From: Raja brachyura
Lineage: Eukaryota
Length of the DNA stretch: 64,000 nucleotides
Assembly (NCBI GenBank): GCA_963514005.1
Contig: OY740795.1
Location: 930,001 to 994,000 of the forward strand
Reading direction: 5' to 3'
In this document: positions 55,009 to 62,495 of the stretch, one piece after another
Layout of the letters: every line of letters begins with the position of its first letter
How positions within the stretch are numbered: position 1 is the stretch's first letter
Program-made: the position numbers and the translations under genes
The notes under the pieces: generated by a model
Told to the model about the DNA's origin: nothing
What the model saw: only the letters and a program-made list of their open reading frames with translations
The model's database searches: none

Positions 55009-55478
55009 TAATTAAACCAATATACAGGCTCAGAACCGCGACCATAGAGCGAGGCCGTGGAGATATATTGATATATCCACGGTTGTTTGAATGTCCGTTC
55101 AATAATCCTGCAAAATTACGATAGGTTTTGAGATACCCCCACCCCCACCCCACCCAATGCATTCATTTTTCCTCCCTGCTCTGTCCATCTTTCCCACCCA
55201 ACGTCGCCTCCTATCCCCAACGACGATAGAAAATAATTATCGCCTACATATAATCTGGAGCAGCATTCTGCGAGTAAATTCGGTAATGAATAGATTAAGA
55301 ACTGGGACAAAAACACAAACTGCTGGAGAAACATTGCTGATGAAAGACTATCTGTACCGATAAAGGGATAATCAACGCCTTGTGTCGATCCAGGCGCTCT
55401 ACAGGGAATTCTGAACCTGGTTCTCTCGTTCGTTACGTTTGTTGCCTCTTTAATAAAATCAGAATGAATCGCCTTCAC

Positions 55479-55632
55479 CATATAACCATATAACCATATA
55501 ACAATTACAGCACGGAAACAGGCCTTCTCGGCCCTTCCAGTCTGTGCCGACCATTTATTTTCCCCTAGTCCCATCTACCTGCACTCAGACCATACCCCTC
55601 CATTCCCTTCCCGTCCATATACCTATCCACCT
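55479..55632 (-). mobile_element. Short CR1 3' end ((TTATATGG)n-tail family)
   Basis: CATATAAC repeats plus a 3' UTR like that at 226-375; TTCAC on both sides. Confidence 0.85.
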
Positions 55633-56528
55633 ATTCACGCATGATATCATGCAACGCTTTCTCTCCTCCTCTCTTTTGCAAACGTGAAAAATAGTTTGTC
55701 TGCGGGTTTGGTTTTGAAGTAGCTGTGGTAGCATATCCGTCACGCCGGAGGCAGTTATTGATGAAGGATCAGCAGACATGTCTAATGGGCAACAGTGACA
55801 AGCAGCACCTGGAGACTGACACCGGAAACAGAAAGGACAGTCGGTGGAGAGGTGGAGTGCTATTTCCGGAGTCCCGGGCAATTGGAGGAACTATATGGGC
55901 CAGGCAACATCTGTGAAGAGAAATGGGTCAACGACGTTTCGGGTCTGAAACGTTTGTCAGACTTTGGAGGCACCCGTGAAGAAGGCCCCCCACGAGAAAC
56001 GGACCCCGACCATCCCCCCCACAGCAGCCACCTGGCTCGCTGAGTTCTTCTAGCAAAGATCACAACAACATGCTGGAGTAACTCAGCGCCTGAAGCAACA
56101 TCGCTGGAGAAAAGACATGGGTGATGTTCGTCCAGCAATTCCTAGATCGTCCAGCAATTCCTTTGCTCATGAGTCGTTTCCAGGTTTGCTCACTTTTTCC
56201 TTTGGCCTATTTATTTTTTCTCACTTTCCTTTTTGTTTCGTCGTTCCTCGTCCATTACGGTCTCCGTTATTTTTCCGTCCTCATTTGCAATATGATAGGG
56301 AAAGGTTTCTACATGTGTTGCACCTTCTGCATAGAAAATACATTGGTTTCATTTCCAACGGTGTTGCAACAGTATTGTATTCCGCATATCTTTCTCGTTT
56401 CACACCACCATTTGCATTAATATATGTTTTTGTTGTACTAGTGCAGGGTGTGATCTGCCCAAATAACACAAAATAACAACGGTTCCGCCGTATCTCTGTA
56501 CCAATAAACCAGTACCAATGCAAATGCC

Positions 56529-58596: not shown

Positions 58597-59050
58597 ATAG
58601 AAACATAGAAATTAGGTGCAGGAGTAGGCCATTCGGCCCTTCGAGCCTGCACCGCCATTCAATATGATCATGGCTGATCATCCAACTCAGTATCCCGTAC
58701 CTGCCTTCTCCCCATACCCTCTGATCCCCTTAGCCACACGGGCCACATCTAACTCCCTCTTAAATATAGCCAATGAACTGGCCTCAACTACCCTCTGTGG
58801 CAGAGACCCACCACTCTCTGTGTGAAAAAAGTCCTTCTCATCTCGGTCCTAAAGGATTTCCCGCTTATCCTTAAGCTGTGACCCCTTGTCCTGGACCTCC
58901 CCAACATCGGGAACAATCTTCCTGCATCTAGCCTGTCCAACCCCTTAAGAATTTTGTACGTTTCTATAAGATCGCCTCTCAATCTCCTAAATTCTGGAGA
59001 GTATAAACCGAGTCTATGCAGTCTTTGTTCATAAGACAGTCCTGACATCC
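58597..59050 (-). mobile_element. CR1 3' fragment with CAGGAC on both sides
   Basis: ORF2 C-terminus, 3' UTR and CATAGAAA tail; CAGGAC at 58591-58596 and 59051-59056. Confidence 0.9.
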
Positions 59051-60301
59051 CAGGACTGCTTTCTGCGTGTGGAATGTAAGAATAAGGGGCAAGCCATTTA
59101 GAACGGAGACGAGGAAACACTTTTTCACACAGAGAGTTGTGTGTCTGTCTCAGATGGCGGTGGAGGCCAGTTCTCTGGATACTTCAAGTGTGAGCTAGAT
59201 AGGGCACCTAAAGATAACGGAGTCAGGGGATATGGGGAGAAGGCAGGAACGAGTACTGATTAGGGATGATCAACAATGAATGGCGGTGCTGGCTCGAAGG
59301 GCGAATGGCCTACTCCTGCACCTATTGTCTATTTTCTATTTCTACTGGTCGGATGATTCAGTTGCCTGCTAACTGCTGGCAAGAAACTGTCCCTGAATCT
59401 GGATTAGTTTTTCATGTTCGGCATAGACATTGTGGGCGGAGGACCACATCAGGCACACCACCCTTTCCATATTACATATAAATTGGCAACTCAGATCAAT
59501 ACGATGTAACAGTCGCTTAATTGTCGAATCGGCATATTTGCAAAAGGATAGGGGTCTCTCAGGTCGCGAACCATTGCCTCCACTTAGGCATGTAGAATAC
59601 TTTGGACAATGCGGCTCCCAAATACTCCCAGTCCCTGACTAATTGAAGGCATGCCAGTATCTATATAGGCCCCTTGATCGTCCGATAAGCATCTCCGCCT
59701 TGCCAGATAATCGGTGCGGCAAAACGACCAAGCAACGTTGTTTAGCGATTCCCTGAAGTACACATGGCCGTAGGATCGGAGTTCTCTCCCTCATCATAGC
59801 TCTTGGTTGGAAAGGATGTCAAGGGTTATGAGGAATCAAAGAAACATAGAAACAGAAAATATGTGCATGACTACGCCACTCCGTCCTTCGAGCCAGCACC
59901 GCCATTCATTATGATCACGACTGATCATCCAAAATCAGTACCAGTTCCTGCTTTCCCCCCATATTCCGTCAGCCCTAATAGCGATATCTAACTCTCTCTG
60001 TTGAAAACATCCAGTGCATTGGCCTCCATTGCCTTCTTTGGCAGAGAACTCCACAGAATCACAACTATCCGAGTGAAAACGTTTTTCTTCATCTCAGTCC
60101 TAAATGGGCTACCGCTTATTCTTTACTGTGACACCTTTGTTCTGGGCTTCCGCAACATCGTGAACATTTGTCCTGCCTCTAGCCTGTCCAATCCCTTAAG
60201 AATTGTATATGTTTCTATGATCCCCTCTAATCCTTCTAAATTCCAGTGAATGCAAGCCCATTCGACAATTTAACCTCGTCATTTGATTGTTTTCCAGGAA
60301 T

Positions 60302-62495
60302 ATTCATGCGCCTGGTAATGGACCTGTCTTAGAATTTTATTATTCAATTCTTGCAACTTTCGGTGTTCCAGCTAAAATGCGATTTAACTAGAGGGCAACG
60401 AAGGCCTTCATATATGGTTGTCTTTTTCTTTTTTTGTTATTTATCGAGCGTTTCTTTACGAATTATGCAGAAACAAATTGCTCAATTATTTGTTCTCTCT
60501 TGTGTTTCTGAAAAATATCAATGCAATCAAGTCTCGGAAAGCAGGGGAAACGCTTATGTTTTTGCGAGCACAGCTATAGATCTGCCAACTGCTGTGCACG
60601 GGACTCGAGAGGCTTTTTTTCTGGGGGGGGGTAAATGGCAGGTTTTCATTGTTGTCAGGGAGAATTTCGTCGTACAACAAGGTTATGACGTAGAGGAAAT
60701 CCCGTTCTGTCATCCGTTCGTATTTTTTTTTCAACGCGTTGCTGGTCTATTGAATCCCCGGATTTGAAAGTCGCGGCTCAAAGTCAAGGCCTTAAAAATC
60801 ACGGATCGCAAGTTAAGGACAAAACAAAATGTATGTAGGACGTGTGTTTCACATGTTATCTAGTTTCTGGTGTAATTTAATTTTAATCTGATGATGCGAA
60901 ATAAATTCATTATGCCCCGATATTGGCAACATGATAATTATCCGTATTGTGTAATTCTCTATCCATGATCACTATTTTCATGCTAAATATCTGACTAAAA
61001 ACTTCCACAATTCATACAGATCGGTCATGGCTACCGCCATCTTCAACATGGCGGCCGCCAATTGACATGGCGGCGGCGATGACCGATCTGTTTGTATGTC
61101 TGTCCGCCTCGATCACAGCTTTTGAGTTGTCAATAGAAAAACAATAAGGAACAAGATGCTAATTTCCTGGTATGAAGAGGACCATAACTATGTTCATACT
61201 GAAGACCTGAAAGTGAATTAGGTAAATATTAAAGTTTTTATGCCTTATCTAATGGGATAAATTAGAGGTTTGATTTATTAAATCACAACATTTTTAAACA
61301 TTCCAACAGGTTGGTCTATCAGATGTGTTGTGAGTTGGTGTTGCTTTATATTTTGACATGCAGAATGCTCTCTCCCATGTACGCCTTACTCTCAACACTT
61401 TCATGATTATCTACGGAACTCGGCATCGCCAAAAAACATCTCTAACGCGTCATTCATCCCATAACCAACATGTGTTGAAATACGTCAAAATATTACAGTT
61501 CTGTTTTAGGCGGCCATGGACTCGTATTCTGTGAGCGACCGTTATGGTTTGTGTCGCTCCCTTCTTCGGATAAATTGCTGACAATAACGCTGTTGGACGT
61601 ATGAACTTTCAAATAGCCCGCGTGTCCGGGTAAAGTGTCACGTGGACGCATAGAGTAATCACTGGGATCACTCCAGGAGTCGGATCCAATATTCTTACCC
61701 CGCAAGACACATGCAGGGTAAACGGTGAACTATTCATAGTGTGTTATTCCAATTGCATTATTTGATGTCCAATGCATTCAATGCTTATCATTTGTTCGTT
61801 TGATGTGTTAAGTGATACATGGGATCTCATATAAACCATAACTATTGATATGAATAAGAAATATATTATTTAATTGTAATGCCGGCAACTCGCGTGTGCG
61901 AGGAGCGGTCAATGTAAAGTAAAACGCGTGCGGTTTCAATTAGATAAACTCATCTCAGGATAATGTAACGGGGTGCCTAATCATTACTGTTCTCTCCAAC
62001 AATCGTTCACGCCACCNNNNNNNNNNNNNNNNNNNNNNNNNNNNNNNNNNNNNNNNNNNNNNNNNNNNNNNNNNNNNNNNNNNNNNNNNNNNNNNNNNNN
62101 NNNNNNNNNNNNNNNNNNNNNNNNNNNNNNNNNNNNNNNNNNNNNNNNNNNNNNNNNNNNNNNNNNNNNNNNNNNNNNNNNNNNNNNNNNNNNNNNNNNN
62201 NNNNNNNNNNNNNNNNNNNNNNNNNNNNNNNNNNNNNNNNNACCTGGTGACGATTGTAATTCTCTCGCAAGGAAGATGCGGCCTCTCCAAATGCTACCTG
62301 GTATTTATGGCGGTGGCGGATATCCTGGTCATTGTCACTGCCGTTATCTGATGCCGACCTCGGGTCATTTACCTCAACTCCACGTTGCTGTCCACCATCC
62401 CGGCGTGCAGTCTCATTATTCTGCTCACCTGGGCTTCCGTCAGGTTCACGGTCGCGTTCACCTTCGATCGGTTCGTGGCCATTTGTTGCCAGAAA
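60302..62495 (+). pseudogene. GPR139/GPR142-like GPCR pseudogene, copy 4
   Basis: Exon 1 (60302-60371) has ATG>ATT and donor GT>CT; exon 2 has a TGA at 62349-62351 and 9-nt and 12-nt deletions, and is cut off after [11 protein letters not shown] by CR1 sequence. Confidence 0.92.

Follow-up and report, generated by a model that had tools for sequence, protein, structure and literature searches.

In a 64,000-nucleotide stretch of the genome of the skate Raja brachyura (assembly GCA_963514005.1, contig OY740795.1, positions 930,001 to 994,000 of the forward strand), V gene segments of the type found in T-cell receptors (TCRs) lie among genes for GPR139-like G-protein coupled receptors. This whole stretch is called the window below, with positions counted from its first letter. 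The window holds three V segments (V1, V2 and V3) and four receptor copies (A, B, C and D), and is dense in long interspersed nuclear elements (LINEs) with endonuclease and reverse-transcriptase domains. Two cassettes, at 925-18234 (cassette 1, with V1 and receptor A) and 55450-62495 (cassette 2, with V2 and receptor D), each combine a TRDV3-like V segment and its recombination signal sequence of the 23-nt-spacer kind (23-RSS), LINE fragments and a GPR139-like receptor. The colinearity of the cassettes, the gene structures, the lesions and two classes of divergence are read directly from the letters. On balance, we favor one old duplication of V and receptor followed by patchy gene conversion between the copies. 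Joint copying of this V-receptor pair is probable, and V plus receptor is one of at least two duplication units in the array.

Colinear order of the two cassettes

Self-BLAST comparison of cassette 1 with cassette 2 recovered 13 matching blocks in identical order, all on the + strand. The chain begins at the left homology edge of both cassettes (925-961 with 55450-55484) and continues through 7080-7615 with 55636-56164, 7620-8150 with 56315-56830, 8156-9477 with 56894-58198, 9518-9647 with 58301-58441, 9722-10184 with 58479-58951, 13762-14071 with 59051-59333, 15185-15477 with 59801-60084, 16087-16380 with 60275-60563, 16390-16438 with 61306-61354, 16783-17318 with 61364-61894, 17683-17726 with 61960-62003, and 17963-18234 with 62245-62495. 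A first-pass annotation, made by a model from the sequence alone, had described a V and a receptor as colinear between about 0.9-18.2 kb and 55.4-62.5 kb; the ordered blocks agree with it, as does the start of homology near 0.9 kb, where the match begins at 925 and 55450.

The two V blocks (7080-9805 in cassette 1 and 55636-58594 in cassette 2, both +) match each other and nothing else in the window (repeat depth 1). Blocks of the receptor unit have a depth of 1-3, with the extra copy in B only, and the LINE parts a depth of 8-17. In both cassettes the receptor gene lies downstream of the V on the same strand; the spacing is 2.4 kb in cassette 2, and in cassette 1, where a LINE body adds ~3.9 kb, it is 6.9 kb. 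The difference in total cassette length is made up of copy-specific insertions (962-7079 and 9812-~13700 in cassette 1; 55477-55629 and 60564-61305 in cassette 2). Five stretches of the window are unread: 14074-14698, 17730-17962, 33137-33426, 33492-33686 and 62017-62241.

Directly 3' of the V flank common to both cassettes, a minus-strand LINE, LINE(-), occupies the same insertion site in each copy, and the flank can be aligned up to the LINE tail. In cassette 1 this element is near full length (9806-13700, -, the 5' end at ~13700 being approximate), with an endonuclease domain in the open reading frame (ORF) 11661-12239, and in cassette 2 only ~460 bp of its 3' end are kept (58595-59055, -). 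A plus-strand 3' fragment, LINE(+), follows at 13762-14071 and 59051-59339, with a similar 5' truncation point in the two partners. These elements are termed CR1-like after the label of the first-pass annotation, the domain evidence being limited to endonuclease and reverse transcriptase.

Two classes of divergence between the cassettes

Divergence was counted as mismatches per aligned site between cassette 1 and cassette 2 (receptor A with D), gaps excluded; the blocks omit the insertions specific to one copy, the badly aligned 9660-9719 (13/34) and 9476-9499. Among non-coding blocks, the eight that reach 200 sites were strongly heterogeneous (chi-square 66.8, 7 df, p 7e-12) and fell into two classes that are each homogeneous: a low class, pooled at 0.075 (chi-square p 0.78), and a high class, pooled at 0.154 (p 0.12). 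The low class comprises the V 5' flank (114/1587, 0.072), the near V 3' flank (15/210, 0.071), LINE(-) (27/341, 0.079) and LINE(+) (25/283, 0.088). The high class comprises the far V 3' flank at 9433-9805 (41/279, 0.147), a LINE junction at the start of the receptor unit (43/282, 0.152), and the 5' part (48/237, 0.203) and middle (72/530, 0.136) of the receptor intron. Mismatch along the V block runs at 0.05-0.10 up to ~9430 and at 0.12-0.18 across 9433-9805. The two-class pattern persists when CpG sites are removed, though the far V 3' flank then stands out less. The segment from leader to RSS differs at 43/477 sites (0.090) and the last part of the intron at 3/44 (0.068). Receptor exon 2 also belongs to the low class, with synonymous divergence (dS) of 0.051 between A and D and 0.033 between B and D over ~61 synonymous sites.

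Both classes are present on either side of the point at which homology between the cassettes breaks. The far V 3' flank, a stretch private to the two V blocks, is as divergent as the middle of the receptor intron (0.147 and 0.136, Fisher p 0.67), so at least that V-side sequence duplicated at the age of the receptor unit. High-class divergence in V-private sequence and receptor units alike therefore fits one old joint duplication, and low-class sequence on both sides fits later conversion patches. The first-pass annotation had taken clearly different divergence in V flanks and receptor introns as a sign of separate duplications, and the comparison came out both ways: the V 5' flank and the intron are unequal, and the far V 3' flank and the intron are alike. 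A simple scheme of a young V and an old receptor was dropped as the sole reading, in view of the old-level V 3' flank and the young-level receptor exon 2.

Receptor unit B and sequence exchange with receptor A

The receptor unit has also been duplicated on its own. Unit B (20803-30218, +; exon 1 at 26272-26341, exon 2 at 28126-29042) is a tandem copy of A that lacks a V, with A 14833-20041 corresponding to B 20803-30218 and A 14833-15470 to B 20803-21409; tblastn detected no V-like match upstream of unit B. Distances among A, B and D form a near trichotomy in the middle of the intron (A-B 0.155, A-D 0.151, B-D 0.170), and are 0.207, 0.192 and 0.235, respectively, in the LINE junction; A-D was never the largest distance in these comparisons. 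Since the receptor unit was also copied without a V, and A, B and D are about equidistant, the duplication unit is not uniquely V plus receptor.

Receptors A and B, 98.3% identical in protein and 10 kb apart, differ unevenly along their length. Mismatch is 0.01-0.025 across exon 2, 0.04-0.10 around exon 1 and 0.06-0.11 in the 3' flank, compared to 0.13-0.20 in mid intron and 0.16-0.23 elsewhere. The dS of exon 2 is 0.054, with a ratio of nonsynonymous divergence (dN) to dS of 0.13, against 0.155 in the intron. From this alignment, A and B form a clear conversion-like mosaic, and we take sequence exchange between copies to be a fact of this locus. Low divergence therefore cannot be read as a sign of young duplication here.

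Duplication history of the cassettes

In the history that we favor, a single ancestral segment carrying V and receptor would have duplicated long ago, leaving a background difference of ~0.15 in non-coding sequence. The copies would later have undergone gene conversion or unequal exchange with each other, which homogenized patches that now stand ~0.03-0.09 apart, namely the V gene with ~2.3 kb of flanks, the two LINE fragments behind the V, and the end of the receptor intron together with exon 2. The receptor unit would also duplicate alone, as in A and B, which have no V between them, and exchange sequence with its neighbor. After the split, V2 would have stayed functional-looking, changing mostly in the loops of complementarity-determining regions (CDRs) 1 and 2, and receptor D would have lost its start codon and donor site, gained a stop, and lost its 3' two-thirds through a LINE-associated deletion. 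What we infer within this history is the sequence in which the events took place and the attribution of the low class to conversion.

Several points weigh against it. The V 5' flank and the receptor intron are clearly unequal (0.072 and 0.136), with Fisher p 1e-4 at all sites and 8e-5 at non-CpG sites. The high class on the V side comprises only 279 aligned sites in an indel-rich stretch, and at non-CpG sites the contrast of the far V 3' flank (28/243, 0.115) with the V 5' flank (91/1394, 0.065) is weaker, at p 0.01. A later duplication would explain the homogeneous low-class tract, ~2.3 kb plus the pair of LINE fragments, equally well. Trees within the window agree, with ((V1,V2),V3) for the V segments and ((A,B),D),C for the receptors, and this congruence of three V and four receptor copies is weak in that one rooted topology in three agrees by chance. 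In the LINE tree, the nearest relative of the cassette 2 LINE(-) is an inverted copy 11 kb upstream, at 47355-47762 (support 0.964), and not its partner in cassette 1; this placement may reflect LINE-LINE exchange or poor resolution of a young family.

The remaining difficulty is the join itself. The link sequence of cassette 2 (59348-59800), at which homology between A and D breaks, found no partner in the window, a sensitive search included; the old LINE fragment at A 14699-15184 is common to A and B only and has no counterpart in D, and homology of the A and D receptor units begins only at 15185. At the position of the unmatched link, cassette 1 has an unread stretch (14074-14698). Because 59348-59800 and A 14699-15184 are unmatched and 14074-14698 is unread, no shared junction of V block and receptor unit is visible, and such a junction, the strongest proof of co-duplication, is missing here.

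In the main alternative, two events were involved: receptor units multiplied first (at ~0.15), and a block of only the V, its flanks and the two LINE fragments was copied later (at ~0.075) to a place upstream of another receptor unit, perhaps through unequal crossing-over at scattered LINE or receptor repeats. V2 and receptor D would then have been copied separately. We regard this as possible but rather doubtful. It would accommodate the inequality of V 5' flank and intron, the long and uniform low-class tract, a homology break whose position coincides with the boundary of LINE(+) and receptor unit, block edges that fall at LINE fragments of which the window holds at least 15 copies, and the equidistance of A, B and D in the intron and LINE junction though B has no V. 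It fits poorly with the old divergence of the far V 3' flank, which is private to the cassettes, and a special mechanism is required for an independent copy to arrive in the same orientation and similarly placed ahead of a receptor unit. The receptor has low-divergence patches of its own (exon 2, dS 0.03-0.05), and a low value alone gives no date for a duplication in this locus.

A second alternative is that a dense array of V and receptor genes with common LINE families makes any V and the next receptor look colinear. LINE fragments, present 8-17 times in the window, do make up much of the chain between V and receptor, and the junction singled out by the first-pass annotation bears on this point as well. 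Receptor unit A opens (14798-15477, +) with an old LINE fragment that meets another one tail to tail, at a LINE junction spanning 15185-15251; unit D opens (59801-60245, +) with the LINE junction and LINE fragment common to A and B. Both junction strings that had been quoted were found, at 15201/15222 and 59817/59838, a count reached in 0 of 100 shuffles. The junction is shared by both cassettes, as had been stated, but it is not specific to them, being present at 21160-21208 in B, where the string recurs at 21176 with 1 mismatch; it therefore marks the receptor unit and not the V-receptor cassette. We nonetheless consider a chance appearance of colinearity improbable: 2.7 kb of non-repeat V-block sequence are common to the two cassettes only, LINE(-) sits at an identical insertion site in both, and V3 and receptor C share only short non-coding pieces with the cassettes. 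The junction copies of A, B and D also form one group in the LINE tree (support 0.959), and so are copies by duplication and not independent insertions; within this group A and D are weakly paired (0.805).

The claim that V and receptor were copied together is in this way supported by block order, the shared LINE site and the age of the far flank, and opposed by the divergence of the V 5' flank and the homology break.

Sequencing-run support for cassette 2

Contigs of four sequencing runs were compared with 57300-62000. Run X1, possibly from the source sample, matched 58107-58619 and 59315-59914 with 0 differing letters. The V2 block was covered at 95% or more in two related organisms, at 57377-58441 (run X2) and 57345-58441 (run X6), with at most 14 differing letters per contig, and a further X6 contig (59396-59912), like the second X1 contig, crosses the right edge of the unique link. 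As contigs from two related organisms, ~97-98% alike, carry the V2 block and link sequence, the arrangement of cassette 2 is genuine at this edge and older than their split. The LINE fragments at 58595-59339 are unbridged among the contigs listed from the four runs, and the adjacency of V2 and link therein rests on the assembly.

Mis-assembly of one cassette, or of the V block-receptor join, across LINE repeats would find some room in this unbridged interval and in the five unread stretches, two of which were counted inside the cassettes, but it is highly improbable: the copies are 7-15% apart, far above alleles or assembly duplicates, each cassette has its own insertions and target duplications, the X1 contigs and the related organism's contig agree with the assembly, and two independent mis-joins would need to yield the same order.

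V segments

V1 and V2 share a leader exon, a short intron and a V exon in predicted open frames. The leader exon of V1 (8729-8768, +) consists of MFSHILMIICTAF plus 1 nt, with the ATG at 8729 and a donor GT at 8769, as read from sequence and translation; its V exon (8866-9169, +) is intact and TRDV3-like (Pfam V-set E 1.1e-17), with an acceptor AG at 8864-8865. The recombination signal (9170-9208, +) consists of CACAGTG, a 23-nt spacer and ACAAAAAGC. V2 has a leader exon at 57451-57490 (+; ATG at 57451, donor GT), an intact V exon at 57587-57890 (+; Pfam V-set E 1.9e-17), and a signal at 57891-57929 (+) composed of CACAGTG, a 23-nt spacer and ACAAAAATC. The RSS consensus consists of defined heptamer and nonamer motifs, and a scan of both strands of the 64 kb returned the V1 and V2 signals as its sole two matches, each with 0 heptamer mismatches and 1 nonamer mismatch. 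Both translations carry IQC, LYWYRQ and YLCAL, which we take to be the V-domain landmarks of the conserved Cys, the Trp and the YxC motif.

The named relatives that match best are V regions of TCR delta. Among solved structures in the PDB, the top matches to V1 include human TRDV3 (7lli, 1.3e-16) and a V-delta chain (1tvd), and antibody scFv chains score similarly. A protein search that returned 2 proteins only gave a coelacanth "T cell receptor delta variable 3" with 58% identity to V1. Judged by domain, exon structure, RSS and relatives, V1 and V2 are identified by sequence as putative germline V gene segments of the TCR delta/alpha type.

The proteins of V1 and V2 are 84% identical. They differ at 17/102 residues, of which 8 fall in two loop regions: 5 differences are found in the interval from the first Cys to the Trp and 3 more behind FILYRDN, regions that presumably correspond to the CDR1 and CDR2 loops. 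Another 4 lie directly before TVKIQC. The V of the second cassette had been described as intact and diverged, and V2 is indeed open and that far removed from V1. With a dN/dS of 0.75, the predicted change between V1 and V2 fits relaxed or diversifying evolution in the loops.

V3 (50592-50949, +; V segment 50592-50909) belongs to another subgroup, with 39-40% amino acid identity to V1 and V2. Its signal, CACGGCG followed by a spacer of ~22 nt counted by eye and ACAAAAACC, is weaker, but the nonamer is perfect. No leader exon was identified for V3. The non-coding likeness of V3 and receptor C to the cassettes is limited to short pieces. An element of ~75 bp upstream of V1 (8294-8347) and V2 (57011-57085) occurs also in the intron of receptor C (44423-44496), and 30 bp at 56760-56789 recur ahead of V3, at 50434-50463. 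Both may be small repeats and possibly correspond to the "SINE" (short interspersed element) of the first-pass annotation; its "SINE pair" found no confirmation in an Rfam scan of 55000-64000, which gave no match.

Receptor genes A, B and C

The receptor gene has two coding exons separated by an intron of 1.5-1.9 kb. It had been annotated as a single-exon gene, and this did not hold, as a separate first exon of 24 codons lies upstream. Open frames of ~300 amino acids at 17965-18873 (A), 28134-29042 (B) and 44983-45885 (C) are 7tm_1 domains (Pfam E 8e-14 to 2.5e-13 for exon 2), and are ~25 N-terminal residues shorter than annotated skate and shark relatives. The N-terminal residues MHAPGNGP...GVP are encoded in the first exon, at 16114, 26272, 43416 and 60302. 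GT follows the first exon in A, B and C and not in D, and a polypyrimidine tract and AG stand just upstream of exon 2 in B and C. Searches were made with each exon separately.

Exon 1 of receptor A (16114-16183, +) comprises MHAPGNGPVFAVYYSILATFGVP plus 1 nt, with a donor GT at 16184, and its translation corresponds to the N-terminal ends of proteins annotated in skates and sharks. Exon 2 (17963-18873, +) is open in its readable part, with 302 amino acids and a 7tm_1 domain (E 1.6e-13); its acceptor and first few nucleotides are unread, the unread stretch 17730-17962 covering the intron end and exon 2 start, for which the homologous interval in B is 77 bp. Receptor C (43416-45885, +; exon 1 at 43416-43485, exon 2 at 44978-45885) is an old paralogue, with a dS of 1.25 to A. 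Unit B carries LINE insertions of its own at 21644-23796, 24109-25933 and 27259-27745.

The closest receptor proteins are from Leucoraja erinacea (90%) and Amblyraja radiata (75%). A protein search gave 1949 proteins with E at or below 0.001 among 3374 candidates, and nearly all of the best 120 relatives come from elasmobranchs and bear the NCBI name "probable G-protein coupled receptor 139". The best matches of the family sit on several chromosome-sized contigs per species. By sequence likeness, the receptors are placed as members of a large elasmobranch GPR139-like expansion.

Receptor D

Receptor D is an unprocessed pseudogene, its lesions lying in a copy that retains the intron and flanks. 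The exon 1 remnant (60302-60371, +) has ATT for its start codon and CT in place of the donor GT. The exon 2 remnant (62242-62495, +) carries 9-nt and 12-nt deletions and an in-frame TGA, and ends at 62495 next to LINE pieces at 62499-63663, with everything past codon ~90 gone. Between A and D, dN is 0.070 and dS 0.051. The decay of the second cassette's receptor had been noted in the first-pass annotation, and the ATG to ATT and GT to CT changes, the TGA, the two deletions and the 3' loss bear this out.

An unread stretch (62017-62241) interrupts receptor D. Its left flank (61953-62016) aligns to B 28001-28064 and its right flank (62242-62330) to B 28129-28226, in the order and orientation of a single gene copy, and the homologous interval in B is 64 bp. 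Alignment of both flanks to the gap-free copy B therefore shows that the unread stretch takes in the final part of the intron, the acceptor position and the initial 3 nt of exon 2. The lesions of D all lie in read sequence, and its pseudogene status is therefore independent of the unread stretch. The unread stretches of A and D lie at the same homologous place, which in B is 64-77 bp long and CT-rich; this pairing suggests a recurring assembly failure at a low-complexity tract.

Receptor D also lacks ~600 bp upstream of exon 1 that are common to A and B (15479-16086 in A, compared to 60245-60275 in D), and some of its promoter side may be gone too. At the window's right end, 64 bp (63937-64000) match A 14798-14861 at 82.8% and resemble the beginning of B too. 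Another receptor unit could follow directly on D, in an arrangement like that of A and B, but the 64 bp cover a conserved LINE coding motif and carry no weight either way.

LINE elements and copy-specific insertions

The LINE found only in cassette 1 at 962-7079 (6.1 kb, - strand) is flanked by an 11-bp target duplication, cacgcattata, at 951-961 and 7080-7090. It has an open ORF of 887 amino acids for endonuclease and reverse transcriptase (2545-5208, -) and a terminal T-run. By these features the element looks young and probably entered cassette 1 after the split from cassette 2. A few bp from this LINE site, cassette 2 has a 153-bp insert of its own (55477-55629) that is 97% identical to 225-377. 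This insert is one copy of a second LINE 3'-end family of ~520 bp, 90-97% alike, which also occurs at 217-766, 48370-48890, 48883-49395 and 51341-51848, the two copies at 48.4-49.4 kb being arranged head to tail.

The LINE(+) pair groups with a third copy in the LINE tree, the three forming an unordered set. Pfam gave no family for 3 of the 6 repeat ORFs scanned.

Significance and comparison with known systems

The sole putative passenger receptor in the window is the pseudogene D. The window contains one probable joint copy, with a receptor that has since died, and one receptor-only copy that is intact where readable; this argues that joint copying does occur, though working receptors in this locus mainly arise otherwise. 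With conversion patches over V genes and receptor exons, pairwise divergence is no naive clock in this locus. As a more speculative extension, which we put forward tentatively and hold to be unlikely as it stands, the skate TCR delta/alpha V array and the GPR139-like family may form one multi-megabase array of alternating genes that grows by shared duplication and is partly homogenized by conversion. If so, growth of the V repertoire and of a family of candidate sensory receptors would be mechanically coupled, each supplying raw copies of the other. If V and receptor are routinely copied as one unit, part of the size of the GPR139-like family would be owed to selection on the T-cell repertoire and not on the receptors, or the reverse, and one multigene family would be hitch-hiking on another to which it is unrelated.

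No publication linking GPR139 with shark or skate TCR loci was found among the titles and abstract starts of the literature, supplements aside, and a search of titles found no paper on a skate TCR locus. The receptors themselves resemble human GPR139, an orphan or aromatic-amino-acid receptor, by sequence: GPR139 (PDB 7vug) is the best, weak, solved-structure match of receptor B exon 2 (E 2.1e-7, 33.9 bits, residues 1-192). The skate genes differ from it in their large elasmobranch expansion and 24-codon first exon.

Concerted evolution by gene conversion is a known phenomenon in tandem gene arrays. The window resembles such arrays in its mosaic of low and high divergence and in exons that are closer than introns (0.054 and 0.155 for A-B). 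Unlike the typical case, tracts of at least 2 kb between copies 46 kb apart are long; the mosaic is judged from divergence values.

Genes riding along in immune-gene arrays are already known, and the skate V-receptor pair is a further example of such an arrangement. The trypsinogen genes of the TRB locus number 5 in cattle, 8 in human and 20 in mouse, in a locus shaped by tandem V duplication (PMC2685407). As in the skate window, an unrelated gene family has multiplied among TCR V segments within the locus (PMC2685407). The skate case differs in its TCR delta/alpha-type V region, in the passenger being a 7TM (seven-transmembrane) receptor, and in a receptor unit that also multiplies without a V. 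Closer in kind are the olfactory receptor genes among the first TRAV genes, OR10G2 and OR4E2 in human and three Olfr genes in mouse, with synteny conserved in sheep (PMC4574546). These too are 7TM receptor genes between TRA/TRD V segments; they number 2-3, occupy the 5' edge of the locus in long-conserved synteny and, in the passages on them in that source, show no sign of V co-duplication (PMC4574546). The skate receptors, in contrast, are of a different family, and their duplication and conversion are recent.

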